Shown piece after piece: positions 1 through 29,069 of a DNA stretch of 64,000 nucleotides (its first letter is position 1; each line of letters starts with the position of its first letter). The notes beneath the pieces are model-generated. The model did no database searches, was not told where the DNA came from, and was given only the letters and a program-made list of their open reading frames with translations. The position numbers and the translations under genes are program-made. Origin of the DNA: Rhodosorus marinus CCMP1338 (lineage: Eukaryota; Plantae; Rhodophyta); NCBI GenBank assembly GCA_029953675.1, contig JAMWBK010000007.1, positions 1,364,001 through 1,428,000 of the forward strand, read 5' to 3'.

Positions 1-147
1 GCTGGTGCCTGTTTTTTCTTTTGAACGTAGCATGAGACCCCGGTAGCGGGGTTCCAGTAAGTTTCTCCCTAGATAGGATTAGACGTAGTGTTGCGCTGCA
101 GTAGGCAGCTGCCCAGTAAAGCTTATGGTTACGTTAGTCTGGGGTTA
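1..147 (+). mobile_element. 3' end of a CRE-like (RLE) non-LTR element: last codons, 3'UTR hairpin, tail module, terminal 16-nt motif
   Basis: Bases 1-30 align to the RLE C-terminus at ~7995-8025 (LVPVFSFERS vs LIPYFSFYRS). Then hairpin gagaccccg-gtag-cggggttc (34-54), module gcgctgcagtaggcagctgcccagtaaag, and ggttacgttagtctggggtta (127-147). Opposite orientation to the other copies. Confidence 0.7.
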
Positions 148-1230
148 TGCGTTGGCGTTCTTTGTATCCCAGTAGGTTATCGGCCTCGGGTGCCTGGCCA
201 GTTGACAGGGTCACATGCCGATCGGGGTGTCGCAGGTTAAAGGATCCGAAAATCGCTGTCCTGAAAACTCCCCGTGTAATGCCGCTTTGGAGAAGCGGGA
301 TTGCGTCTGGGTGGCATAGCAGGCTGGCGTGGGAGGCAATGAAGTCCACGTGCACCACATAAGAGCTCGGGATCCCCAATGCTTGGCAAAGAACCGTTGA
401 AAAGTCTGATGGGGCCACTTCATCGTGCCGCGGGGTCATACATTCCTGAGAGTGGCGAGGACCGGTGTGGTATCTGGTCCCCAGATAGCTCCTTCCACCG
501 TAGCGTGCAGCTGTCTCAGGGCAATTTGCTGGGTCTGCGGCCCTGGGCGTCCTACTGTGCGGGTTTGTGCGGCTTCTCCGCGCACTGAGGCTTTCTGATC
601 CGTGCGCTCAGCGTAGGTAGGTTGTGTACTGCCATTCCCGATGACTGGGAAGGCCTCTGCGTAGTCCAGTGCGACCGTGACACCTGCCCTAACCGGAAGT
701 TGATTGAGACGCGTTCCGGCTGCATGTTGATTGATGGCCGCCGCCCGCGGGTGCTGTTGCAGGATTTGGGAGGGGTTCGGTGCTGCGGCTCCACCGTGCC
801 ACATATAAGGTTTTGCTGAAAGCTCGGAGAGACGTGCGGTAGTTCCTTCGAGTTCAGTGGTGCTGTTAATCCGATGATGATGCTGTTAATCCGTGAGTAG
901 AGTTTGAATACAGCCTGGTAGAAGTCCGCGATAACTGCTTCACCATTTCCCAACTCCTGATAGCGCCGGTCAAAGGCGCGAAGTTGGTGCAAAAAGGCTG
1001 CCGCAGGTCCAGTTGCCTCTTGAGTCTCCATCCTGTAAGCCTCCTGTGCGTTCGCTGCTTCTAAATCCTGGGTGCTTGTGGTCCTGCCGTTATGGCCTAC
1101 GACTCCCAGTCGGTGTCGCCATCCCCTCTTCGCCTGGGCCAGGGCCGTTGGTGCCCGGGTGGCGGAGAGGTTCTGGGTCCGGTCCCAGGGTCTCCTTCTC
1201 GATCATAAAGCTTTCCTTAATAAAACCTCA
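134..1230 (-). pseudogene. Degenerate ORF1/gag-like 5' region of the CRE-like element, diverged subfamily
   Basis: Frameshifted ORFs 552-1031, 436-804 and 134-439 join into ...FYQAVFKLYSR...TYAER...QQIALRQLHATVEG..WGPDTTPVLATLRNV*PRHD..VLCQALGIP..HPDAIP..RGVFR..FGSF. Homologous to 2091-3047 and 5661-6785. Confidence 0.55.
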
Positions 1231-1260
1231 GCGTATGTTTGTGCATGTTAGCCCCTTAAC

Positions 1261-2070
1261 CTTACCCAGACTAACGTAACCGTAAACTTTCCCCCAGCTG
1301 TAACCGTAAACTTTACTGGGCAGCTGCCTACTGCAGCGTATCACTATTTCTACTACTATCTAGGGATCTGCGATCCCACATCGCTCAGCTCCTCGCTCCT
1401 GTGCAGTAGGTGTTTGCAGCTGTCCCGGAGAAAGTCCTGTGCCATAACCCCAGACTAACTTAACCCCGTAGCCTTTATTCGGCAGCTACCTACCGCAGCG
1501 CAATACCACTACTATATGTTCGTTCTAAACTCACATACACCCCCTGTCCAGGGGTCTCATCTAAGTTCTACTCGAGGGAAATATCGTCCTATCCGCGCTA
1601 TCTTTCTCGATCGCATGCTCAACTGGCGCAGCATTTTGCTGCCACAGAATCCGATTTAATTGACCCCTCACCGACGACAGATGGGAGTCACGATCATGCA
1701 GATGCGTTGTCCCTATGCGAAGAAATTCAAGGCTTGCCTCGCCCATTCGACCAAAAGTCTCGAAAATGAACGGCACAAAAACGAGGTCTCGGTTTTCCAC
1801 CCTCGGCACTTCCTTAGAATGCAACGCCTTCGCTTGTTCTGCTTGTCTCGCAGCATGCCCGCAACTCCAGCTCGTATGTCTCAACTGATGCCTTTGAAGT
1901 GGCGATGTTACCATCACGTCCACCACGTACACGCAACCGCCCGTCGGGTGCCGTGCTACAATATCGGGTCGAATTCCGGACCCAGCAAAGAACCCCTGAG
2001 GCTCTACTAATATCTCTGTGAAATTCCATAGGTGTAGCCATGGACTCAGTTCGACTTTCAGCTCATCGTG
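1261..2070 (-). mobile_element. 5'-truncated CRE-clade non-LTR retrotransposon: RLE domain (1561-2070) plus 3'UTR with two stacked tails
   Basis: Translation HDELKVELSPW..EPQGFFAGSGIRPDIVAR..VVDVMVTSP..AEQAK..FVPFIFETFGRMGEASLEFL..QLNRILWQQNA is the RHD / PD-(D/E)xK signature of CRE RLE domains. The 5' end is joined directly to the GGGG of the 16-nt motif (2071-2090). Confidence 0.85.
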
Positions 2071-2090
2071 CCCCGGACTAACGTAACCCC

Positions 2091-3047
2091 TCCCTGGTGA
2101 TCTTGCCGGCGTCTCGCGAAGGATCCGAACACACCTGAGCGGAAGACTCCCCTAGCTATTGCGCTGGTGATGAAGGGCATCGCGTCAGGGTGACATACCA
2201 GCAGTGCGTGGGTGGCAACAAAATTGATATTTGCAACCAGGTGTACCAGAATACCCAACGCTGTGCACAATACTTGTTTGTAATCCGAACTGGGACAATC
2301 GCAACCGGGACAGTCCAGGGTGGGACAACAGGATCTAGCATTCCCCGCCTTGGGACATACCCCTCCCAGTGGCACTTACGCAAAGCGTGCGGCCAAGACA
2401 GCCCGGATGCGTCAGCAGACAGCCCTCCGACAACTGCACGCAACGGTTGGAGGAGGTAGATGGGGGCCCCGATACATACCCGGTGCTCGCGACGTTGCGC
2501 AACGTACACCCGCAGCGAAACGAATTGGTGTGCGCTCTCGGACAAACAAGTCCTGTGCACAGCGTTGGGTGTTCCGGTACACCTGGTTGCACATATCGAT
2601 TTTGTTGCCACCCACGCACTGCTGGTACGTCACCCTGACGCGATACCCTTCATCACCAGCGCCATGGCTAGGGGAGCTTTCCGCTCAGGTGTGTTCGGAT
2701 CCTTCGCGAATACCCAATCAGTTTGGTCATATCTAACTTGGGACAGCCCCACGCGGAACGGTCACTTATGGGACAACCCGAGTTGGGACAACAGCAACTG
2801 GGACGACAGCACTGGGACAATCGCAACCGGGACAGCAGAGTCCGCGACAGTCCGGGGTGGGACAACAGGGTCTAGCCTTGGGACGTACCCCTCCCAGTGA
2901 CATGTACGCACAGCGTGCGATCAAGGCAGCCGGTATGCGTTAGCAGACAGCCCTCCGACAACTGCACGCAACGGTTGGAGGAAGTAGATGGGGCCCGATA
3001 CATACCCGGTGCTCGCGACGTTGCGGAGCGCCACCAATTCGTTGCGC
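2091..3047. mobile_element. Rearranged ORF1-like fragments: inverted plus tandem duplications
   Basis: 2091-2281 (-) and 2542-2709 (+) both encode VLCTALG..HPDA.PFITSA.ARG.FRSGVFGSF. 2290-2510 and 2811-3047 are direct copies of the RQLHATV/PVLATLR block also present inverted at 5661-5910. Confidence 0.7.
2114..2709. repeat. Inverted repeat, 168-bp arms (2114-2281 / 2542-2709), 260-bp spacer
   Basis: Direct reverse-complement comparison, about a dozen mismatches. Confidence 0.9.
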
Positions 3048-3899
3048 GTAACCCCAACGTACGCCCGCCGCGATAAGGCAAGACCATGAGAAGCCAGCTA
3101 GATCAAGACAGGAACACAGTCTGTAACGCTGTGAATACTGGAAACTAACCCTCCAGCTCAGCAAGCTCAACTCTTGCCTGTACCTGAAAGCACCCAGACT
3201 AAACAAAACAGCCTGGACTGCCCTCAAGGACAAATCAGAAGCCAAAAATAGCAATAGAACACCGAACCAAGTACTTGACACAACAAAGGATAAGCTCAAT
3301 CAAGACATCTCAGAGACAGGAATCAGCAAAGACCAGCCACTCCAATCAATACCAAATACAATATAGGGAAGCCCATTCAAAAAGTTACAGAGACCTGCTC
3401 AATCCGACAACAGCACCTATATAGCCCGGAACACCTCTTAGCCATATACGAAACAAGATCTTAACCCGTCAAACCAGTAGAACAAACACCAGAAGAAGCC
3501 TTGAAAACAAGACTGAGAACCCTCCGCCCCCTCAAAGCTCCAAACAAATGCCCTAGTGGAAATATTTCAGCCACCTCAGGAGAATCTCTATAGAGAGACT
3601 GGCCCCAAATCATAAACCCCTAGAGAAATATCAAGCAGCCACCACTGTCAAGCAGCCACCACTCTAGAGATGCCACCCATTGTAACCTCCTAGGGACGAA
3701 TTCAATTAAAGCAAATAACCTAGTGAAAGATGTATAACCCCCTGAAATACTCAAACTAACAAACAAATATAGTAGCAAACTCAACCAAGCAGCCTAACCC
3801 CCAGCCCTCATCTTCCTCATCACGTACGATCCGGATCGGGAGGGCTTTTGCGTTGTATTTCTTGTACCTAGAACAAGAAGTACAACACAGTATCAAATA

Positions 3900-5570
3900 T
3901 GACCAGTAGGGAACCAGGACTAAATAACACCTCTCATACCTCCTAAACCCTAAGTCTTCTCAATCAGCCACTATCTCCACTAGGTAATCACTATAGAGGG
4001 CGGTCCCCCTAACACTAGTTGGGAACAACATCTGAAAGCCTGGACCCAGTCAAAAGAATCTATCCAGCCAGCTTCCTCCCCCCCCCTCCTCCGCGATCCA
4101 ATCTCACAAGCAGCCTGAATATATATTGATAGCCTCAGGAACCACAAACCAGCCCCTGCAAGGTTGGTACCCAGGTAAGCCCCTTTTCCCCCATTTGAGC
4201 CGATTTTGGACTAAATCTAGTAGGGAACAGGAGTCAAAAACAACGAAATGCAAAAAATACGCAATAATCCGAAATAACGCCAAAACTGCAACTGCATATA
4301 GAGCCCGATCTTCAAAGAAAACTATTCGCCGGGCAACCTTGCGAAGCAAACTCTCAAGCAGCCACCCTCCTCAGCCCCAGATCCTTGAGCTGGCACCCCT
4401 CAAAGCTCGACATTTAGAGTCCCAGCGAAGCGAATCCTCCTCCAGCCACCTTCAAATCAGGCCATATCACATTGATAACCGAAAAACGGCCTCTGCACGG
4501 TACCTACACAGATAAGGTCGTTTTGCCCCCTTTTTGCCCATTTTAGACAATATTTAGTAGGGAACAGCACCACAAAACAGTGAAAGGCAGAAAAGTACCG
4601 AAATACAGAAAACCAGCTAAAACTGCATAAAAGGCGTAAAAACTATCCACCAGACACAACCAGCCTAAAAAACCCACCAGCCATAAGTTTGAGCTCTGGA
4701 GAGCGGAGACACAGTTCGACACTTCGAGATAGATTGCGCGGGGCGCGCGCCGGTTTTCGCTGAAGCCCCAGAAAAGGTAGGTACCCTGCCCATGTCAGAT
4801 CATTTTCATCAAATATGCCACTTTTTCCCTATAAATTAGTCGGGAACAGAAGCACAAAAACATGAAATGCACGCTTTCACTCGACCAGCGGAACGGAGCC
4901 ATTTTTGCATTCCGAGTCCATCGCAAAGAAAGTGTCAGGTTACCCCATAAAAAGAGCACTTTTGCCTCAAAAACCACCCTAAAACACCTTATTTGGCCAC
5001 CTTTCTGAAACCCTGCACTACTCGCCGCCATTTTGCAACCCACACCCCCTCTGTTATTTTTTTTTGTACCTCGAAAAAGGCTTAATTAGTACTGTTCCCT
5101 GCAAAACATCGCTCTCGCAAGCGGATATTAGCCAAAACAAAAACATGAATAATTTGAAATAAAAAATCACGAAACGAACAAATTTTATTTGCGGACAATA
5201 GGATGACGGAGTCATTCAAAACGCCGAGAGTACCGAGGCCCCCAGGGGGTACCTGCGAAGGGGGTGCAGGGATGTCCCCCCGATCTGCCCAATAGAAAAC
5301 CTCCAAACCCTCCCCCTCGTTTGTACGACTGTCCTCTGCCCTGAAAAAATCTCGTTCTGACCTGAAAAATCGCTTGTTCCCTATAAAAAAAAAACCATTT
5401 TTTCCCCTTTTTCGCCTCGTTTGCCCTGAAAAAATCGCCTCCCCTCGATTGGACCTGAAAAATCGCCTTGGATCGTCTCGTTTGCGTCGAAAAACTTTGA
5501 CAAACGTTGAAAACGATGCGATTTGGTAGGGAACGTTCGTTTGTCGCGTCTCGTTTGCGTTGAAAACCCC
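3900..5570. repeat. A/C-skewed spacer with recurring short motifs (TAGTAGGGAAC family; CCTGAAAAATC x4; ~130-bp diverged duplication)
   Basis: tag(t/w)(a/c/t)gggaac at ~3905, 4017, 4219, 4555, 4837, 5525 and inverted at ~5087. (g/a)ccctgaaaaa(a)tc x4 in 5337-5470. 4160-4285 is similar to 4520-4635. Confidence 0.55.
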
Positions 5571-5647
5571 TTCACTGAGTCCGATCCTTCGGGAAATGGG
5601 GCGCCCGCGCGTGTCGCTTGCCTCCTTGGCGCTCAAATCGCCTGAGG

Positions 5648-6800
5648 GTAACCCCAACGTACGCCCCCCGCGCAACGCATTGGTGGCGCTCCGCAACGTC
5701 GCGAGCACGGGTACGTATCGGGGTCCCTTCTACTTCCTCCAACCGTTGCGTGCAATTGTCGGAGGACTGTCTGCTGACGCATCCCGGCTGCCTTGGCCGC
5801 ACGCTGTGCGTACGTGCCACGGGGAGGGGTATGTCCCAAGGCGGGGAATGCTAGATCCTGTTGTCCCACCCCGGACTGTCCCGGACTCTGCTGTCCCGGT
5901 TGCGATTGTCCCAGTTGCTGTCGTCCCAGTTGCTGTCGTCCCAGTTGCTGTCGTCCCAGTTGCTGTCGTCCCAGTTGCTGTCGTCCCAGTTGCTGTCGTC
6001 CCAGTTGCTGTCGTCCCAGTTGCTGTCGTCCCAGTTGCTGTCGTCCCAGTTGCTGTCGTCCCAGTTGCTGTCGTCCCAGTTGCTGTCGTCCCAGTTGCTG
6101 TCGTCCCAGTTGCTGTCGTCCCAGTTGCTGTCGTCCCATTTGGTGTTGTCCCAGTTGGTGTTGTCCCAGTTGGTGTTGTCCCAGTTGGTGTTGTCCCAGT
6201 TGGTGTTGTCCCAGTTGGTGTTGTCCCAGTTGGTGTTGTCCCAGTTGGTGTTGTCCCGGTTGGTGTTGTCCCGGTTGGTGTTGTCCCAGTTGGTGTTGTC
6301 CCAAGTCGGGTTGTCCCAAGTTAGATATGACCAAACTGATTGGGTATCTCGGCCTGCCGCCTGCGAGGCTGGGGCGCGACTAAAGTCCACCAGATGTGAT
6401 GTTCACCCAGGGCTTCGAGTCCGGCGTTGATGCCCTTGAGATCGTCGGTGTTGGCTGCCCGGGACTACAGCTTGTAGACCCGAGCGAAGAAACGTTCGAG
6501 CTCTCCTTCTGATACCCCAGAATTGCGGTAGAACTCCGTATATGATTAAAGTTTCCCCAAGAGTGCATGAACAGCATCTTCTTTCGCAGTGGTGGGAGAG
6601 GTGGGCGTTGGCACCATCTCTGCGTCTTCATCTTCTCCTTGGTCGGCGACAGAGCCGCGCGGCACACCGTTTTCTGCGATGTGCCCCTCCTCTCGATGTT
6701 CGGCTGCAGAGAGATGCGTCTCCCCCGTAGGTGCACAGACACTGTTCGAGTTCCCCTCCCCAGTCGAGGGGGGGATCGCCACCATTTGGCATGGTTTATC
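5648..6800 (-). pseudogene. ORF1/gag-like 5' region of the CRE-like element containing the expanded minisatellite
   Basis: MVAIPPSTGEG..DAVHALLGKL*SYTEFYRNSGVSEGELERFFARVYKL*SR (homologous to 552-1031), then repeats, then TYAQRAA..RQQTVLRQLHATVGG..PDTYP. Ends at degenerate motif gtaaccccaacgt (5648-5660). Confidence 0.65.
5896..6315. repeat. Bipartite 15-bp minisatellite, 28 units
   Basis: 15 x ccagttgctgtcgtc (5911-6135) followed by 11 x cc(a/g)(g/t)ttggtgttgtc (6136-6300), with one degenerate unit on each side. No unique spacers. Confidence 0.97.
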
Positions 6801-6859
6801 CCAAACTAACCAAGCTTACAAACTTTCCGTCCGAACCCTATCCAATACTAACCAAACTT

Positions 6860-7638
6860 CAGACTAACGTAACCCCGTAGCTTTTTGCGTGTCCCCAGAC
6901 TAACGTCAGACTAACACAACCGTAAACTTTACTGGGCAGCTGCCTACTGCAGCGTATCACTATTTCTACTGCTATCTAGGGAAAAGCTCACGCTAACCCC
7001 GTAGCCTGTATTCGGCTGCTACCAACGAACGAATTGTTTAATAACCGCGCACTACTAAAACACTCTGTACGCTCTAAACATACCCAGACCCCCTGTCCAG
7101 GGGTCTCACCTAAATCTAGCTAACGGAAATATCGCCCGGTCCGCCCAGTCCTTCTCGATCGCGTGTTCTACTAACTGCGCATTTTGCTGCCATAAAATAC
7201 GGTTCAACTGACCTCTTACCGATGATAGGTATGTTTCACGATCATGAAGACGAGCAGTTGCCTTTCCCAGAAACTCTAGCCCTGCCTGTCCCAGCCGTCC
7301 GTACGTCTCAAGAATGAATAGTACGAGTATCACCTCCCTGCGTTCAGCGCATATTACCGCCTGGTGGGGTGCCACTTTGCTTTGCTCTCCTTTCTCCGCG
7401 GCATATCCGTTTCTCCAGCTCATTTGCCTCAGTTGATGACGTTGAAGCGGCGACGTCACCATTACGTCCACCACGCACACATGCCCGCTAGTCAGGTTCC
7501 TTGCTATAATATCTGGTAGAATACCTGACCCGGAAAAGAACCCTTGGGGCTCCACTTGTAGGTCCGTAAAATTCCGCTGGTGCATCCATCGGCTCAGCTC
7601 CATTTTTAGTTCATCATGTCGCTTTCCTCGCAAGCGCA
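6860..7638 (-). mobile_element. 5'-truncated CRE-clade element: RLE domain (7106-7638) plus 3'UTR with stacked tails
   Basis: RHDELKMELSRW..EPQGFFSGSGILPDIIARN..VVDVMVTSP..AEKGEQSK..LETYGRLGQAGLEFL..QLNRILWQQNA. Hairpin gacccctgtccaggggtc follows the stop. The 5' end abuts ccccagactaacgtaac (7639-7655). Confidence 0.88.
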
Positions 7639-8803
7639 CCCCAGACTAACGTAACTGTATCCTTTATTCGGCTGCTGCCTACTGCAGCGCAACGCTAGTT
7701 CGAACAGCTTTGGTCACGTGGATAAGTCGGGTTTAGAGTGGTTGCGGAAATGTTTTGCTGAGCATCCTACTGAATATTTGGCGCTCTTGAGGCGTTTAAG
7801 TGTCTCCCTTTGGCGATATTCCAGCCACATGCTTTCCGAGGCGCGCCATCGGCGCCTGGGGTTGCATGCTTCCCTCCCTAGTTATTAGTTCATCTTCACG
7901 CCTTGCGTAGCGCTTCAGGCTATGCTAGTGAAGTCCAGTTCGAACACTATTTAGGGGAAAGGATCGGTGTAACCCCGCATCCCGGGGTCTCTAGCTACGA
8001 TAAAAAGAAAAATAAGGAATCAGCGGCTGGTCCGACTGATCCACAAGAAGTGCGCCTAATGCGAGCTCCGCGTTCCCTTCCCAAAGCGTCCTGTTGATCT
8101 GAGCCCGTACGTTGCTCAGTTCCTCGACCTTTGTCAGCATATGACTGCATCTATCCCGAAGAAACTATTGCGTTAGCTCTCCTGTCCGTCCAAATGTCTC
8201 GATCGCCATCGGTATGAACTTATCGTCCGGGTGCTCGATGGATATTGCCTCCTTGTAATGTGCAACTTTCCAGCGCTCCATTTCGCTAAAATTCCATTAG
8301 TATCTCGGCTCCGTGCAAGGTGTCTGGTCTGTAATGGCGACACCACAGTCACGTCAAAGGCGAATCGCTACCACGTTCCTGGGTGGATGGCCACCAGGCC
8401 AGGCCCCAGATTGTAGTTCTCAAAGTAGTGCGTTGGTTCTTGCTTGATCTCTCGAAATTGCCACCGGTTCAACCACCTCGCTATCTCTGTGCATATGGCA
8501 TCGTGTCTCCTTTGCCATAGTCCCGTCGACGTTTGGCAGTGGTGCAGTCTTTGTACTCCGTTCGTACGGTGTACTATCGCACGTAGTACACGTCTCCGTC
8601 GGCAATCCCGGAATCGGGAGTCCCAACGGTTGTCGGATGTTCAAATGCGTTCCCGGTCCGCTCAATTTCCTCGGGCCAAAGTGTGGCAAATCGCGTAGCC
8701 AAACTCCAGAGCCAGCACCTGCAGCAGATCGGATTCGGGCTCGGTGTTCTTCGTCAATTCTTGCGTCCGTCACAAGCCTAATAATTCTAGACTTTCGAGC
8801 CAC
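7639..8803 (-). mobile_element. Degenerate CRE-clade element 3' part (pre-RLE, zinc-knuckle region, RLE, 3'UTR), second subfamily
   Basis: RARIRSAAGAGSGVWLRDLP..LS..LGLPIPG..CTTC, then with frameshifts FDVTVVSP..KVAHY..FIPMAIETFGRTG..FL..QINRTLWEGNA. 3'UTR hairpin at ~7970-7992 and tail ending at the 16-nt motif. Confidence 0.78.
7707..7936 (+). mobile_element. Short 5'-truncated 3' end of a different RLE-type LINE family, with 10-bp TSD
   Basis: Flanked by AGTTCGAACA (7697-7706, 7937-7946); removal restores the host tail module. Encodes FGHVDKSGLEWLRK..LRRLSVSLWRYSSHML, which is RLE C-terminus-like. 7815-7938 is nearly identical to the reverse complement of ~15850-15974. Confidence 0.75.
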
Positions 8804-9122
8804 TGCTGATGCATGACGGGGGAGATACTAACCCTCTGTGGGACTGTGAAGAGCCAGCACATATCCAGACGACGTGTTCGAAAGTGTGTTGTTAAAGTGC
8901 TTAGGACCAGTCTGAGCTAAGATCTTGAACTGAGGGTTTGTCACTCAGATCGGTTCCTGACCAAGAAGCAGTTTCTGATCAACGAACGAGAATGAATCAT
9001 TTCAACCTCGTGAAGCAAAATCGGTTACCAAAGGTTAACATAAAAAGAGCTTTTGCTGATTGTTGCAGTTCAACGGAGTCTGAAAAGACTTCAGCCTAGA
9101 CTTAGGGCATGGAATTTTTTTA

Positions 9123-10106
9123 TCAGTTTGTAGCTTGAATAAAGTCTGTAAACCTGTCCTGTGGATCCACCTGGTCGTTCGTCGGGGAATAGAAGACGTT
9201 GATGCCAGAGCCACCGTACAATAAGTCTCGGTCTCCGTCGAGAGGAATCCGAGCATAATCATCACCAGTTGACCCGAAGAACCTATCTTTTCCATCCCCC
9301 GGCTGGAAATCGTCGTTCCCACCAAAGCCGTAGAAGGTGTCATCCCCTCCAGCTCCTCGGGCATAGTCTTTCGGAAATGAGCCGAACACAAAATCGTCTC
9401 CTTCGGCGGTGGAGATGTAGTTCGCCCGAGTTCCTCCCAACCTTCCGATATAGAAGACGTCGTCCTCGTCGGTTCCGTAAAAATAAGCATAGTATTCATC
9501 GTACCTAAAGTCGGGAGTTGTAATCAAGTTGGGGCAGGTGATCTGCAGGTCACAGCCCTCGCCAGAACATCTGTTGTCATCGAGCGCCAGAACTTGTTCT
9601 TCACCTTCCACATCAACTACCGCCTGGACGACGAGGCAACGAGTTGTATCGCAGCAAAGTTCCAATGCCGGAATATTCTTGAAGCAGAGGATAGCATTGC
9701 TAACGAGGCCGCTCTTCGTCGTCGTCGTGTCCGCAAGTACCTGAAACTTTGATTCATCGGTGGGGATCGAGTTACAGTTCGGGTGGACGCCAGCTCTAAT
9801 GCTCTTTATATTCGCTTTGGGTACGTTCTTCACCGAGACCCTAATACACTGACGACCGCTGTTCCTTCGACGATAGTTCTTCACGCAGACCTTCGAAGCC
9901 TTGCCGTCAGCTACAACTCCGAGGTTCGTTCTGCGGCAGTATGTTTCACTCCATAAAATCCTCCCGTCCGTATGCAGATCCGCAAAGTCAGCGTACTTCT
10001 CTCCAACGCTCTCCGGGGGGGGAGGAAGCTCAAAACTGTCGCAGTTCGTGGGTGGCCCACCGTTAACGACAACCACCAATGCGAACACAACCAACAACCC
10101 CTTCAT
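9123..10106 (-). CDS. Secreted protein: signal peptide, Cys-rich N-domain, RTX/hemolysin-type Ca2+-binding Gly-Asp repeats (327 aa)
   Basis: ATG at 10106, MKGLLVVFALVVVVNG signal peptide. Nonapeptides ARGAGGDDT, FYGFGGNDD, FQPGDGKDR, FFGSTGDDY, LYGGSGINV. Intact single-exon ORF. Confidence 0.85.
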   Translation of the reverse strand: MKGLLVVFALVVVVNGGPPTNCDSFELPPPPESVGEKYADFADLHTDGRILWSETYCRRTNLGVVADGKASKVCVKNYRRRNSGRQCIRVSVKNVPKANIKSIRAGVHPNCNSIPTDESKFQVLADTTTTKSGLVSNAILCFKNIPALELCCDTTRCLVVQAVVDVEGEEQVLALDDNRCSGEGCDLQITCPNLITTPDFRYDEYYAYFYGTDEDDVFYIGRLGGTRANYISTAEGDDFVFGSFPKDYARGAGGDDTFYGFGGNDDFQPGDGKDRFFGSTGDDYARIPLDGDRDLLYGGSGINVFYSPTNDQVDPQDRFTDFIQATN

Positions 10107-13345: not shown

Positions 13346-15285
13346 ACTCCCCCTCATCCCAGCATCCATGTGCATCCGTGTTACTCCCAAGGATTCCCGA
13401 TGACGAATTAACGCTGGTGTTGAATAGCTTTTGGGGAAAATGTCGGCCACCTGCTCTTCCATAGGAACATACGTGAAAGTGTAATCTCTCAACTCCTCCT
13501 GCTCTTGCACGTACCTGTATGCGATGTCCACATGCTTCAGTCATGCCTTGCCACTTCCGTTAATCCATTTGAGGCATGATTGATTATCATTGTAGACGGT
13601 CGTCGAGGTCGTCTGAATTCCAACCTCGGTGAGTAGTTGATTCATCTGTCGGAGGCAGCAGTCCGTCTGCTACTGCAATTAATTCTGCCTCCCCCGTCGA
13701 AGTAGCCACCGTCCGTTGCCTTCGATTTGCGTATGTTGAAAGACAAGTCTCCACAAAAAACGCGAAAACTGTCGTAGAACGGCGAGTCGTACCGGTACCC
13801 CACGACGCATCCGTGTATAGTACCAGGTTCTGATTCGGGTTCAGGCGGAACTCCAAACCAAAACTCGAGTGTGCCCTTCAAAAAAATACTTCAAGATCCG
13901 TCTCGCAACGACCCAATCTTCACGTTTGGGGATGTGCATGCGCATCGCCAGTGCGCGAACCGCAGAGAGAATATTCTCCTCAAGTCCGTACTTTGTGAGA
14001 AGTTTGTCAACGCAAGGCTTCTGGTGCATCAGCATGATGGAGTCGCCAAAGTTTCTTTCAAACTGGACTCCAAGATAACTGACAATGCCGCCCAGCTCAC
14101 GTGTCTCATACAGGCTCTTGAGGACACTTTCAGCTTTCCGTATCTCGTCCTCAGGTCCTGTAATAATCAAATCATCCACGTATAACAGGATCAGAACGTG
14201 CCCGTTTAAAAATGCGCAGGAGTCCATTTTCAGCTGCGAAAAACCGTGTGTCTTCAAAGATGCCGTGAACGTCTGATTCCAGGCACGGGCTGCATGTTTG
14301 AGACCGTAAAGACCCTTCTAAAGTTGGCATACTCTGTCGGTACCATCAGATGATCCTTCGGGCTGCTCCATGAAAACTTTCTCATGGAGCACACCGTTTA
14401 AGTAGGCAGTTTTGATATCATATTTGTTTGAGCCTCCACCTGCGACTAAGTGCGAGGGACAACAATAACTCGTACAGTCTCAAACTGCACCGTTGCGCTT
14501 CGCCGTAGTCGTGGTTAGTCGTCTCGGTCTTGTTCGAATCCACGTACTACTGGGCGAGCCTTAAACCGCTCAATCGTGCCGTCTTCGTGCTGCTTAATTT
14601 TAAACACAAATTTGTTACGTAGAACTTTCGCATCGCTCGGTCTCTCCACTAAAGTCCACGTGTTATAAGCGTTTAGTGATTGCAATTCCTCCGCTATGAA
14701 GTTTTCCAACGCTCCTTGTGCGGACTAGCCAATGCTTGCTTTAGTGTCTCAGGTTCCGCCTCCGTAGATGTTAAAGCCGTAAGCTGCTAATTCTTCGACG
14801 CCAGAGCGAAATCTTCGGTTCCTCCACGGCGGTGGGTCTTCTGGTTTTGGTAGGTCGTTTTTCTCGACGTATTCGAATGCAGCAAGTCAAAAATATCCTC
14901 GTCGTCGGAATCATCGGCGTTAGGCATCGGAATCCCGTCGTTGACCACCGGCATGGTGGCGTCCTTCTTCTTCAACGGAAACCTGTCCGGGTTATCTCAT
15001 CCCGGACGATCACAAGCTTCTCGGTTTCAAGCTAAATCACCTCGTAATTGCCATGCGGAAAATAACCTAACAATATCCCATATCTGGAAGGGATAGCCAG
15101 TTTACCCTTTCGTTGGTCCTTCCGAAGGTGAATTAGAACTTCTCAACCGAAAGGATACACATTCTTCAAGGTATCCGGCCTTCCGTATAAGACTTCGTGG
15201 GCTGTCTGGTTCCGTCCCTTTCTAGCACGACCGTTCAACAGCCTCTGGACTAGCTGTAGAGTCCATGTCCACCGTTCCGCATTGA

Positions 15286-15377: not shown

Positions 15378-15806
15378 TCTGATTGACGTACATTAAGCGG
15401 ATAAGAGTAAGTATGGATCGATTTGTCCGTTCCGACAATCCATCCGTTTCGGGTGAGTGGGGTGCCGTTGGATCCCATTCAATGCCATGGTTGAGGAGTT
15501 GTTTCGCCAGGCCTTCGTATTCGCCACCTCCATCGGTGTGGAGTACCTTATTCCGTGTGCCCGTCTGCGTTTCGAACCAAACCTTTTAGTCATTAAAAAG
15601 CTGGTATATCTCGTTCTTCTTGCACAGGAAATAAACGCGCGTGAAACGGCTATATTCGTCCACAAAGATGGTTAAGTATGTTTTTCCAATTGCGTTCGTG
15701 GTCACAGGGCCGCATATGTCGGAATGTATTATATCGCCAACCCCTGTGGCCTGCGAAAGACGTCCGTGCCTCGGTTCACGGACGATCTTCACTTCCTTGC
15801 ATATCT

Positions 15807-15970
15807 GGACTTTACTGGACTTTACTAGCATACTTTACTGGACTTTACTAGCATACTTTACTAGCATAGCCTGAAGCGCTACGCAAGGCGTGAAGATGAA
15901 CTAATAACTAGGGAGGGAAGCATGCAACCCCAGGCGCCGATGGCGCGCCTCGGAAAGCATGTCGCTGGAA
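15807..15970 (-). mobile_element. Short 5'-truncated LINE 3' end with tandem-repeat tail inside the Copia pre-integrase, 5-bp TSD
   Basis: TATCT at 15802-15806 and 15971-15975; excision restores tgc aag ata tgc (CKIC). Tail is repeated (agtaaagtatgct/agtaaagtcc). Body is near-identical to 7815-7938. Confidence 0.78.
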
Positions 15971-17832
15971 TATCTTGCATGATTCGTCCTTAAGTTGCTT
16001 GATCATCCGTTTGTTAGCATGCCCGAAATTCGCCTATTGGTGCGAAGGGCTATCGTATTGGGCTAAGGACTCACCTCTAATTTTTTTTCAAACAATATAC
16101 AGTACCTCGGCGAGGGGCCACAGCTTTCAGTTGTCGGTGGAATTTGATCAACGCAACATTGAATCCCATTAGAACTGCTGCTGCATGTGCAGTCATCTGG
16201 GATGCTGAAAGGTAGTTGCGTGTAATTCTATCCAGTCTAGGATTCTATCCACGTAAATTATTCGTTGGAATCTTAGCACTTCTTCCCTTTTCAGTACCAA
16301 ACATCGTAGAACTGCCTCGCCGACCCGGTTGCTAATCAGCTAGTGCCGTCGGCCAAGGTTACGCGGATGGGGGAGCATGCACGAACATTGCTCATCAACT
16401 CAAGGTTGCCAAACATGTGAGTGGGAGCTCTACTGTCGAGCACGATGTCCCAATTGGACACCTGTATTGACATCCCAAACGCCGGCAATGTTTCCAGGTC
16501 GCCGTGTTCCCGGATGCTGATTCCGAGCGTTCCCCGCAGCTCTGAAGGTTTATTTTTACCGGGTTTAGAACTTCCGTAACTTCCTCTATTATGTCTCTGG
16601 GAGCTTTGCTTGACCATTTTTTTGCGCCGCGTCTCACACCGCCTGTGCTGAACCAGCATTGCTGTTTTATATGTCCCATCCGACCGCATTGGTGACGTTG
16701 TGGTCCGGAGTTCCTCTGTGGAGGATCAGAACTGTACTGCGCCAAAAACTCTCTCTTCGGTTGACGGAGTTCAGCTGATTTCAGGCGCTCGCAGCTCAGC
16801 TCCCAAGTGACACGGTCCACGTCCTTGGTGATGAGCGCCTCCAAGGCCCATTCGTACTTGGCGTGGCCCTCAAACATCACTTGCAGCAAACATAGACGTT
16901 TGGCCGGGGATGTTGAGTGCCCATTGATCCTCTATAAACGGTCGTAGATCCTTGAGAGCCCATCTAAGGCCTCTTCAATTTACTGTTGTCCGTCGTATTT
17001 AAGAGTATACAACTGCCGTTCCAGGTCAACTTGATGCTGCAGTGACCAGTTGACAAATTCGTCTTCCAGCTTTCTCAATATAAACACCGGGTGCGCTTAG
17101 GCCCTCTGATAACTCGCTAAGGCTCGCGCGCCCAAAGTCAGTTTGATGCAGGCACCTGCCAGGATACATGTTTCGTCCGAAATGTCCACTCCGCCTCGAT
17201 CGGTGTATGCCCCCTTCGGTATACCGCTCAGGATCAACCGGGAGGTATAGTGCTCCAGCCACTCCGAATAGTCGTCCGCTGTGTTCAGCAGGGGCTTGAA
17301 CTTCATAAAATACTGGCTCGGCTGACTCCCCGTCCTGTAGTTCAATCTCCACGTCAATCACCTTCTTTCCTTCAATCACTTTCAACCACCAGGCCGCGCT
17401 TGGGCTCATAACCTCACGCTTTGCTACCCAGCCGGCGAAGGTTACGACCACAGAGGTGGCCACTAAAAAACGAGCCAACCCGATAACCGCCTGACCACAT
17501 CCCAGAGGTTTCGTAAGGAAGTAAGGCTGAAGCAGTTCTAAGCGATGGTCAGAGATGCAAGCAACGATTATACACAACCCAAGACTAAAAACGATGATGC
17601 TCCGAAGTCCAGGCTCCATCGAAGCGAGAACGCTGACAAAAAAATGACGAGTCAGCAACGAGTACAGTTGCAAAAGTCCCCCGTACTGCGCGGATTGTTT
17701 CGGAGAGGGTCGTCGGTAAATCTCTTTTCAAAAGGGACAGACATTTAATAAACTGTCTACTAGTACATTGAAATCTAAATCAGTAGCTTTACAAAGCTTT
17801 CCGGGCGTATTTCCTCCTCGTTCCCTGCGGGC

Positions 17833-27730: not shown

Positions 27731-28224
27731 TTACATTACACACGTACTATATCCTGCAGAGGATCATTCACACGAAGTGGAACACTCCACATGGGCTTCT
27801 CATTATTCCTGGGGATTCGGGCTTCGGCTTTGGCGCATCGCCTAGTACTTTTGGTCATTGAGTGTTTTGACTTGGATGACGTGAAGCAGGTCTTCCTTTG
27901 GTGTCGATAACGGCTCTCTTTCTTTTGGGCCTCTGCTGCAGAAGTCGAAGTGTGAGGTACATGTTGCGACTATTGACACCCCCCGATTGGTAAACCGTTC
28001 ATGGCAGGATGTCCAGCATGTGCGTGCGAGCCATCTGACAATTGAGCAAAATGGTAAACGAGTTTTGCCACGCATTCGGAACCTCACCCTGTGGCGAAAA
28101 GTTGTTTCTGCCGCGGATGTCTCAGATGAGCGTCCGCCCTCCAGCTCCCCGGTCGATTACAACATCTACTCTCCCAGGAGACTAACCACCGCGCTTTTGA
28201 GGCACTCGTGGACAGTTCTGAGCA

Positions 28225-28930
28225 CTCGAACGAGTTTCGGGCGGGCGTTGGCGCTCATCTGCAGGATTGGGTGCTGGCTCCTGGATTCGTGATTTACCAC
28301 GTGAGGGTCGCCATTCTCTCAGAGCACCAGAGATCCATTTGCCGTTCTGCGCACAGTCAGAAGGGTATTCAACAACTTTTCCATTGCCGTTCTTCCACCG
28401 GCAACTGGGCTCTCCGACAAAACAAGCTTCGAGAAGAGCTAGACGAACACCTCCAAAAGTGTCGCTTAAGCGATACCAGCGTAGAACCTGCGTAATTTGT
28501 ACTGCACGTCCACTGCGTCCGGACGTCGTAGTCCGAAATTACCGCACTGCCGAACAATATGTAGTTGACGTGAAATATCCCGTACCCTCTCTGGCTCGAC
28601 AATATGTGACAAGAACAACTTGCTCTGACATCCGCATCTAGTTCATTGGGGACACTGGCGTACGCCAGTGTCCGAGCTGAAACTATCAAGCGGGCTCACT
28701 ACTGAGAGGCTCTGGGAGATCACAATGATTTTATTATCGTGCCTTGTATTGTACAGGCATTTGGACGGCCTGGGAAGGCGGCAACAGAATTTCTTGCGGA
28801 AGTTACGCAACATCTTGAGCGCAAAGGTGAGCCTTTGGGTTCGGTGAAGGCATGATTCAATCGTAAGCTCTGGCCCGGTATTTTCCAGTCAAATTTCAAT
28901 GCGATGGCACGCGATGCATCTCCAAACAAT
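28225..28930 (+). mobile_element. Degenerate CRE-clade RLE remnant (dispersed copy)
   Basis: GAGSWIRDLP..L; FHC..GNWALRQNKLREEL..SVEP..LRPDVVVRN..YVVDVKYP..AETIKRAHY..VPCIVQAFGRPGKAATEFL..FNRKLW, with stops and frameshifts. Confidence 0.75.
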
Positions 28931-29069
28931 ATTTTTCCCTTAGAATCTAGTTTGCCATCCCGTCAAGGGGTTCTCCTGACGTGGTTTACTGACCTTAACC
29001 TTACATCCTCTTTGTCTTAGCGTTCTTTTGAAAAGAATGAATGTTCTTTAGCGCCACAGTCCGCGGTAC

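Follow-up and report, generated by a model that had tools for sequence, protein, structure and literature searches.

We analysed a 64,000-nucleotide (nt) window of the red alga Rhodosorus marinus CCMP1338 (contig JAMWBK010000007.1, positions 1,364,001 to 1,428,000), the first 8.8 kb of which were confirmed to be a head-to-tail stack of mostly 5'-truncated pieces of retrotransposons that lack long terminal repeats (non-LTR), here long interspersed nuclear elements (LINEs) bearing a restriction-like endonuclease (RLE). Exact matches of the ABCA-transporter ORF and of the gene at 9123-10106 located the window on this contig; window positions are contig positions minus 1,364,000 with the orientation unchanged, and the array covers 1,364,001-1,372,815 of the 2,212,799-bp contig. 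Related copies were found at a second locus on the same contig (L125) and in transcript contigs, among them L001 and L127. The original prediction, made from the window sequence, had placed four RLE-bearing 3' ends in the array, and all four were recovered at their positions: copies B and C are intact, A2 is degenerate, and 1-147 (+) is the 3' end of an A-type element (Table 1). The blocks drawn around these ends did not hold as single units, since they are composites. Block 1261-2070 contains C and an A-type fragment (1264-1447), block 6860-7638 contains B, an A-type 3' untranslated region (UTR; 6893-6996) and a 36-nt tail piece (6857-6892), and block 7639-8803 is a copy carrying a young inverted insert of another family, E2 (7706-7936). 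Read in the sense direction on the minus strand, starting from unique DNA, the order is A2, B, the A-type 3' UTR, the tail piece, Y, an inverted-repeat/minisatellite block, inverted pieces of the first open reading frame (ORF1), a 17-mer, C, the A-type fragment, and X.

The 5' end of A2 adjoins unique DNA at about 8800-8820, and A2, which is P0006-like, shows 30-39% amino acid (aa) identity to B and C (tblastn within the window). The RLEs of C and B are 65% identical in aa sequence and the two copies about 70% identical to each other; B is also 77% identical in nt sequence to L001, which contains a reverse transcriptase (RT). In the A-type fragment behind C, positions 1366-1445 are 90% identical to the A copy upstream of the window (-151 to -72). 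X breaks off at 148 against the inverted tail of the plus-strand A-type element, and the 1-147 piece of that element has inverted matches in the stack (47-147 to 6901-7001; 66-132 to 1300-1366). Upstream of the window (-877 to 0), the plus-strand copy has a pre-RT N-terminal region fused to the middle of the RLE (...RRKNQ/RYALDVTVVSP), reading into the window. This N-terminal region is 71-76% identical in aa sequence to the second ORF (ORF2) of E2, and the copy either lost its entire RT through an internal deletion or is a chimera of different families.

The stack is interrupted at 2710-6347 by a block in which a 15-nt unit (GTCCCAGTTGCTGTC type), repeated about 28 times, forms a minisatellite (about 5880-6300), and the 2.6-kb core is non-coding with repeated 'TAGTAGGGAACAG' units. 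No match of this block to L125 or to the remaining window was found. A public 191-aa gene model at 5596-6512 (+) looks spurious, being a translation of the 15-nt minisatellite.

Table 1. Retrotransposon pieces, tail-end junctions and hairpin sites in the window and at related loci (window positions unless a locus is named).
Feature	Position	Strand	Description
A-type 3' end	1-147	+	Last codons, 3' UTR, and tail ending GTTACGTTAGTCTGGGG at 144; body upstream of the window
X	148-1263	-	5' UTR and ORF1, degenerate, at least two frame breaks; starts right behind the tail at 1264
A-type fragment	1264-1447	-	80-nt RLE-coding piece, 3' UTR, partly duplicated tail; directly behind the tail of C
C	1448-2070	-	5'-truncated; intact RLE ORF 1564-2070 (169 aa); two-hairpin 3' UTR; tail GTTAAGTTAGTCTGGGG at 1448-1464
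Isolated 17-nt tail motif	2071-2087	-	GTTACGTTAGTCCGGGG; between an ORF1 piece and C
ORF1-derived pieces	2088-2709		Inverted duplication, arms 2114-2281 and 2542-2709, 93% complementary
Interrupting block	2710-6347		Bounded by inverted ORF1-like segments; minisatellite and 2.6-kb A/C-rich core; not an RLE element
Y	6348-6856	-	5' UTR and N-terminal part of ORF1, diverged lineage; starts right behind the tail piece at 6857
Tail-only copy	6857-6892	-	36 nt; ...AGCTACGGGGTTACGTTAGTCTGAAG
A-type 3' UTR-only fragment	6893-6996	-	Stacked behind ...GGCTACGGGG of B; 6918-6982 98% identical to 1302-1366
B	6997-7638	-	5'-truncated; intact RLE ORF 7109-7639 (177 aa); 3' UTR ending ...AATACAGGCTACGGGG
A2	7639-8815	-	Degenerate third lineage: linker, CCHC, RLE with stops and frameshifts (8003-8803), 3' UTR, tail 7639-7655
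E2 fragment	7706-7936	+	Young, inverted within the A2 3' UTR; 9-bp direct repeat AGTTCGAAC at 7697-7705 and 7937-7945
Solitary E2 3' fragment	15803-15973	-	171 nt; tail (CCAGTAAAGT)n; 7-bp target-site duplication ATGCAAG; in gene-rich DNA
Old RLE LINE copy	28000-28960	+	Further lineage, degenerate; RLE match 28.2-28.9 kb, ~33% aa identity to B/C; among genes; no recognisable GGGG tail
Tail-end junctions	144, 1264, 1448, 2071, 6857, 6893, 7639; L125 10360; L127 2216		
3' UTR hairpin sites	24-144 (+), 1448-1570 (-), 6990-7116 (-); L001 1829-1935; L126 950-1052		

The copies end in a 17-nt tail, GTTACGTTAGTCYGGGG, for which eight matches with three or fewer mismatches were found in the window against 0.12 expected, a number reached in 0 of 100 shuffles. 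Seven of the eight lie within 1-8803 (128-144 on the plus strand; 1264, 1448, 2071, 6857, 6893, and 7639 on the minus strand). This excess, with the lineages separated by tblastn, bears out the claim that several lineages with a common tail are stacked head-to-tail behind it. Between L125 and the independent transcript contig L127, the 17-mer shows no difference, whereas the remaining 3' UTR agrees at only about 80% by eye. Alignment of eight 3' UTRs gave a conserved core, GCGCTGCAGTAGGCAGCTGCC(C/G)A(G/A)TAAAG..TAC(G/A)G, with the 16-mer TTACGTTAGTCTGGGG behind it; B lacks the 16-mer and stops at ...CTACGGGG, L001 ends alike, and contig L126 stops short of its own tail end. AATAAA or AGTAAA is located 20-27 nt before the 3' end. 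RNAalifold gave two hairpins in the 3' UTR with two compensatory pairs. One, GACCCC(N)...(N)GGGGU, overlaps the ORF2 stop codon, and the other, GCUGC-AGUAG-GCAGC, lies in the core, its GCUAC/GUAGC form in the transcript contigs being a compensatory change. The two hairpins are likely to serve in recognition by the RT.

CRE and NeSL elements target spliced-leader (SL) genes, and the antisense of the tail (CCCCGTAGCCTTTATTCGGC...) resembles the SL of dinoflagellates and perkinsids. An SL target was rejected because R. marinus is a red alga, no Rfam family was matched in the window, and the sequence is the element's own 3' UTR; the element flanks are other elements or unique DNA, not SL RNA genes. 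Trans-splicing is, to our knowledge, not known in red algae. Two further leads were also discarded. A metagenome-wide scan for the 16-mer returned at least 120 matches, all of them due to chance (16-18 nt long and without an RLE in the vicinity), and a by-eye reading of the 44-nt flank behind the L001 tail as antisense ORF1 was not significant in a shuffling test.

The endonuclease was identified from profile searches; Pfam found no domain in the RLE ORFs of the window. A search over 1.8 billion representative proteins retrieved 272 relatives. The long ones among the 272 carry RVT_1 upstream of the C-terminal match, and the best of these is annotated as 'Retrotransposable element SLACS 132 kDa protein' in Diplonema. 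When a 26-sequence RLE profile was compared with the PDB, the C-terminal RLE of R2 proteins, including R2Bm and R2Tg, was matched (E = 3e-6 to 8e-4; 8gh6_A residues 946-1014 at E = 3e-6, also 9nl3 and 9dou), with the RHN...E...PD...DV motif aligned between the profile and the R2 structures. The closest relatives are MMETSP/JGI transcript contigs, of which L001 contains, in order, an RT fragment (VHDD), a linker, a CCHC motif, the RLE, and then the same 3' UTR as the window copies. The CCHC ahead of the RLE is visible in L001, P0003, and A2, and a C-terminal PD-(D/E)XK RLE preceded by CCHC is the hallmark of the RLE-bearing group (R2/R4/NeSL/CRE/HERO). In the relatives (L001, E2 of L125, and distant homologues), the RT lies upstream of the RLE in one ORF with no apurinic/apyrimidinic endonuclease (APE); in the window, tblastn found no RT of the array's family, as had been stated beforehand. 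The best match of the element RT among solved structures is R2 (E = 2e-12), and an RT-based homologue search gave no further loci in the R. marinus genome. An AlphaFold2 model of the B ORF from a 4-sequence alignment (predicted local distance difference test score of 38.5) was too poor for use.

The RepeatMasker source data published with the R. marinus genome list LINE CRE/SLACS as 4,036 pieces comprising 2.82 Mb, or 9.04% of the genome, with R2/R4/NeSL at only 0.06%, and the source data include 24 RepeatModeler LINE/CRE families, of which two show about 1% divergence (PMC10250338). These labels and the SLACS-annotated relative make it plausible that the elements are CRE/SLACS-like LINEs, as the original prediction had proposed, with the clade being given by automated labels. 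The text of that paper contains no discussion of CRE/SLACS LINEs (PMC10250338), and none of the papers in the collection searched links Rhodosorus with retrotransposons. The suggestion of a possibly undescribed system is thus half true: the class is auto-labelled in the published source data, and it was never analysed there.

A full-length element with ORF1 and an RT-containing ORF2 was found at L125. At L125 10360, an A-type tail fragment ending ...GTTACGTTAGTCTGGGG runs at once into element E1 (5'-truncated ORF1, ORF2 N-terminus, and RT), into which a full-length E2, an element of another family, is inserted at about 13,160. E2 comprises a 5' UTR, a 494-aa ORF1, an ORF2 with RVT_1 (E = 3e-16), CCHC, and RLE, and a (CCAGTAAAGT)n tail. 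Besides RVT_1, Pfam returned nothing in the E2 ORF2, with no APE and no N-terminal zinc-finger or Myb domain detected.

The 5' pieces of the array had been described as gag/ORF1-like, of which the ORF1 part stands. The conceptual translation of X (1263 to 148, minus strand) matches one protein, P0164 (R. marinus NDN08_004843, encoded at 2,196,696-2,197,983), with 66% identity, and window 139-641 is 76% identical in nt sequence to L125 10363-10866. As P0164 is directly upstream of the RT ORF in L125, X is a genuine 5' part of an element. The N-terminus of Y is homologous to that of X (32% identity over 60 aa, pairwise E = 3e-8). The gag part was not upheld, as Pfam found no domain, and no gag, in the ORF1s. 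An extension of the ORF1 homology by tblastn through window 14-147 was dismissed as an alignment artefact. The gene model of NDN08_004843 (L125 10001-11288, +) looks spurious: it is a LINE ORF1 with an N-terminus read through a LINE tail, in which VTLVWG is the translation of GTTACGTTAGTCTGGGG. Together with the 191-aa minisatellite model, two public gene models are therefore flagged.

Junctions were counted in the window, L125, and L127, that is, at three loci. Each of the nine tail ends is joined without a gap to a further element piece, which has the same orientation in eight cases, and a tenth junction of like kind is formed by the 3' end of B itself (...GGCTACGGGG at about 6997). The L127 tail, ...GTTACGTTAGTCTGGGG, leads into a copy whose truncation lies in the post-RT linker. 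Three junctions read GGGG/TTATG, and at two junctions the incoming copy, by eye, shares GGGG microhomology (TACGGGG in the A-type coding sequence and GCGGGGTT in its 3' UTR hairpin). B and C had been predicted to be truncated near the RH motif and to begin after a GGGG motif at 7639 and 2071, respectively, and both proved to do so. B starts 21 nt upstream of its own CAT GAT, directly behind ...GTCTGGGG at 7639, and C starts at CAC GAT (H-D), directly behind ...GTCCGGGG at 2071. A duplicate of E2 (L125 17958, +) is truncated in the same way as B (7638, -) and C (2070, -), each beginning no more than about 20 nt from the R-H motif of the RLE. These are three independent truncations in two families, each directly behind a tail, and all three copies keep intact RLE-only ORFs of 169-181 aa; at L125 17958, the preceding tail provides an in-frame ATG. 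The shared truncation point could stem from a truncation hotspot, from microhomology, or from a subgenomic RNA.

Over 65 nt, the two A-type fragments share 98% identity, while B and C, which they follow, are about 70% identical, indicating separate, recurrent insertions at tails. The RT of R2 is known to jump between RNAs, leaving one at its 5' end and continuing at the 3' end of the next, and end-to-end template jumping in single integrations with no tail preference would yield junctions of a complete 3' end with a truncated 5' end; tail-only pieces of 27-36 nt would fit abortive jumps. We consider it improbable that the stack is a by-product of such jumping. Lineages of very unequal divergence are mixed, with 98% identical A fragments behind the 70% identical B and C, and X and Y also start right behind tails although they have a full-length-looking 5' UTR and ORF1. 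In addition, the lone 17-mer at 2071-2087 stands behind an ORF1 fragment, and the same type of junction recurs at three loci.

The assembly of this compact 31-Mb genome was made from long noisy Nanopore reads (PMC10250338), and both an inverted duplication and a minisatellite occur in the region, as might be expected if the mosaic were an assembly artefact in repeat-rich DNA. All the junctions are within a few kb, well inside the length of a single read, the same junction types are present in the independent transcript contig L127 and the second locus L125, and neighbouring copies are too diverged (65-70%) for collapse or mis-joining, leaving misassembly with hardly any credibility.

The array had been assigned to a probable chromosome end, and mapping contradicted this. 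The contig ends are 1.36 Mb and 0.84 Mb away, the array being about 62% along a chromosome-scale contig, and a locus far from a contig end is what the original prediction itself had named as speaking against it. The 877 nt to the left of the window (locus L003 20107-20984) are a leftward continuation of the array, so the window start is only a tile boundary. The whole window contains no tandem TTAGGG, TTTAGGG, AATGGGGGG, or tandem tail units. The R. marinus genome has 13 contigs of >1 Mb, six of them telomere-to-telomere, and its telomere unit is not stated in the paper (PMC10250338).

A telomere-associated retroelement system like MoTeR or Cnl1 would be in keeping with the head-to-tail arrays of 5'-truncated RLE elements, which resemble those of Cnl1/MoTeR, with the G-run at the tail end, and with the second array of the same tail junction (L125), which begins about 16 kb from the right contig end. 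For the present locus, this reading is refuted by the distances to the contig ends, by the window edge being a tiling artefact, and by the repeat search just described. Moreover, 2.8 Mb of CRE-type LINEs in about 4,000 pieces is too much for 26 ends. HeT-A arrays arise by terminal addition, with the elements oriented opposite to those of L125, where the 3' ends face the contig end. Overall, we regard a telomere-associated system as very unlikely.

Outside the array, the window consists of ordinary DNA dense in genes (among them those for an ABC transporter of the ABCA type, BUB1, and an SNF2 helicase), and normal genes begin 300 nt to the right of the array. The first of them (9123-10106, -) encodes a 327-aa secreted-looking protein with weak RTX/hemolysin-type calcium-binding repeats (Pfam E = 0.002, under the curated cut-off). 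An annotated 128-aa gene at 13841-14227 (-) has a weak match to RVT_2 (copia-type RT) and is probably an LTR-retrotransposon remnant. LINE copies are also found outside the tail stack. E2 carries a tail of another kind and integrates at other sites, where it generates target-site duplications, and both E2 pieces of the window (231 nt at 7706-7936, with 93% aa identity, and 171 nt at 15803-15973) are 97-98% identical in nt sequence to L125 copies (three copies in the case of the former), indicating that E2 is a young family.

Zepp/ZeppL clusters have been proposed as the centromeres of green algae, and a comparable role could be considered here, with the island forming all or part of a regional centromere of self-nesting LINEs. 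The island is interstitial (62% along the contig), extends beyond the window, and is built by a self-nesting family; furthermore, the 2.8 Mb of CRE LINEs, if shared out among 13 large contigs, would suffice for an island of about 200 kb on each chromosome. Normal genes, however, start 300 nt to the right of the array, and the second array near a contig end means that such islands are not unique per chromosome. A centromere built in this way is unlikely.

Considering the observed identity and structure of the elements, their tail, the junctions, and the map position, the array is probably the right-hand edge of an interstitial island built by repeated target-primed, tail-directed insertion of CRE/SLACS-like LINEs. 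A full-length element, as found at the second locus, consists of a 5' UTR, ORF1, ORF2 (pre-RT, RT, linker, CCHC, and RLE), and a 3' UTR of roughly 120 nt. The latter contains two conserved hairpins, AATAAA/AGTAAA, and one or two modules terminated by G-runs (...CTACGGGG, then TTACGTTAGTCTGGGG). The array would have been assembled by repeated target-primed reverse transcription, in which new copies, usually 5'-truncated and sometimes of 30-100 nt, would integrate just behind the terminal G-run of a resident tail. By this route, the lineages A, A2, and B/C and the ORF1-bearing X/Y would pile up head-to-tail. The tail may be recognised by the ORF2 endonuclease or through base pairing between the RNA 3' end and the nicked DNA, and the 5' joins may be aided by GGGG microhomology. 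The pattern would later have been blurred by E2 insertions, young and not tail-specific, with target-site duplications, and by an inverted duplication with a minisatellite.

Several points weigh against tail-directed insertion as set out above. The junction count covers three loci with about 30 kb of element sequence, and the insertion point varies, being after CTACGGGG in B and L001 and after GTCTGGGG elsewhere. One junction joins a tail to an inverted ORF1 (147/148). Neither the old copy at 28 kb nor the E2 family is tail-associated, and any specificity would thus be lineage-specific and not absolute. The covariation support for the hairpins is thin (8 sequences), and the CRE-clade placement comes from automated labels and not from our own phylogeny.

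The elements share with CRE1/CRE2, SLACS, and CZAR of trypanosomatids the RT, the C-terminal CCHC and PD-(D/E)XK RLE, and the lack of an APE. SLACS also has an ORF1, and integration in the CRE clade is sequence-targeted. The CRE clade differs in its target, which is the SL RNA gene as opposed to the probable target in R. marinus, the element's own 3' tail, and in its few copies within a gene array, compared to 9% of the R. marinus genome. Cnl1 of Cryptococcus and MoTeR1/2 of Magnaporthe similarly form head-to-tail arrays of 5'-truncated RLE LINEs abutting the previous copy, a feature also found here; however, they are located in or next to telomere repeats and have telomere-like repeats at the element ends, while the R. 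marinus array is interstitial and without them. Zepp/ZeppL of Chlorella, Coccomyxa, and Chlamydomonas are LINEs that insert into their own copies and form nested clusters in compact algal genomes, but they are L1-type elements with an APE and poly(A) tails, whereas the R. marinus elements have an RLE, a specific G-run tail, no APE domain, and no poly(A) at the junctions. R2 shares with the R. marinus elements a recognisably homologous RLE (E = 3e-6), a matching RT (E = 2e-12), a structured 3' UTR, and a defined 3' end, without poly(A), at which reverse transcription begins. It differs in its ribosomal DNA target, and the R. marinus elements have an ORF1 and an N-terminal region in which no zinc-finger or Myb domain was detected.

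RLE LINEs with defined targets, such as R2, are of current interest as insertion tools, and a lineage with another target of 16-17 nt is thus a candidate for biochemical study. It is doubtful that tail-homing CRE-type LINEs, with an endonuclease recognising a defined 16-17-nt target, build and renew the island as a regional centromere or as some other specialised domain of chromatin; were it a centromere, red algae would have in it an equivalent of the green-algal ZeppL centromeres, formed by an unrelated LINE lineage (RLE, not APE). The analysis provides the anatomy and a likely integration rule for a repeat class that makes up 9% of a 31-Mb red-algal genome and was formerly known by an automatic label only. 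Tail-homing would explain how many LINE copies can be present amid dense genes, as they would land in each other and not in genes.

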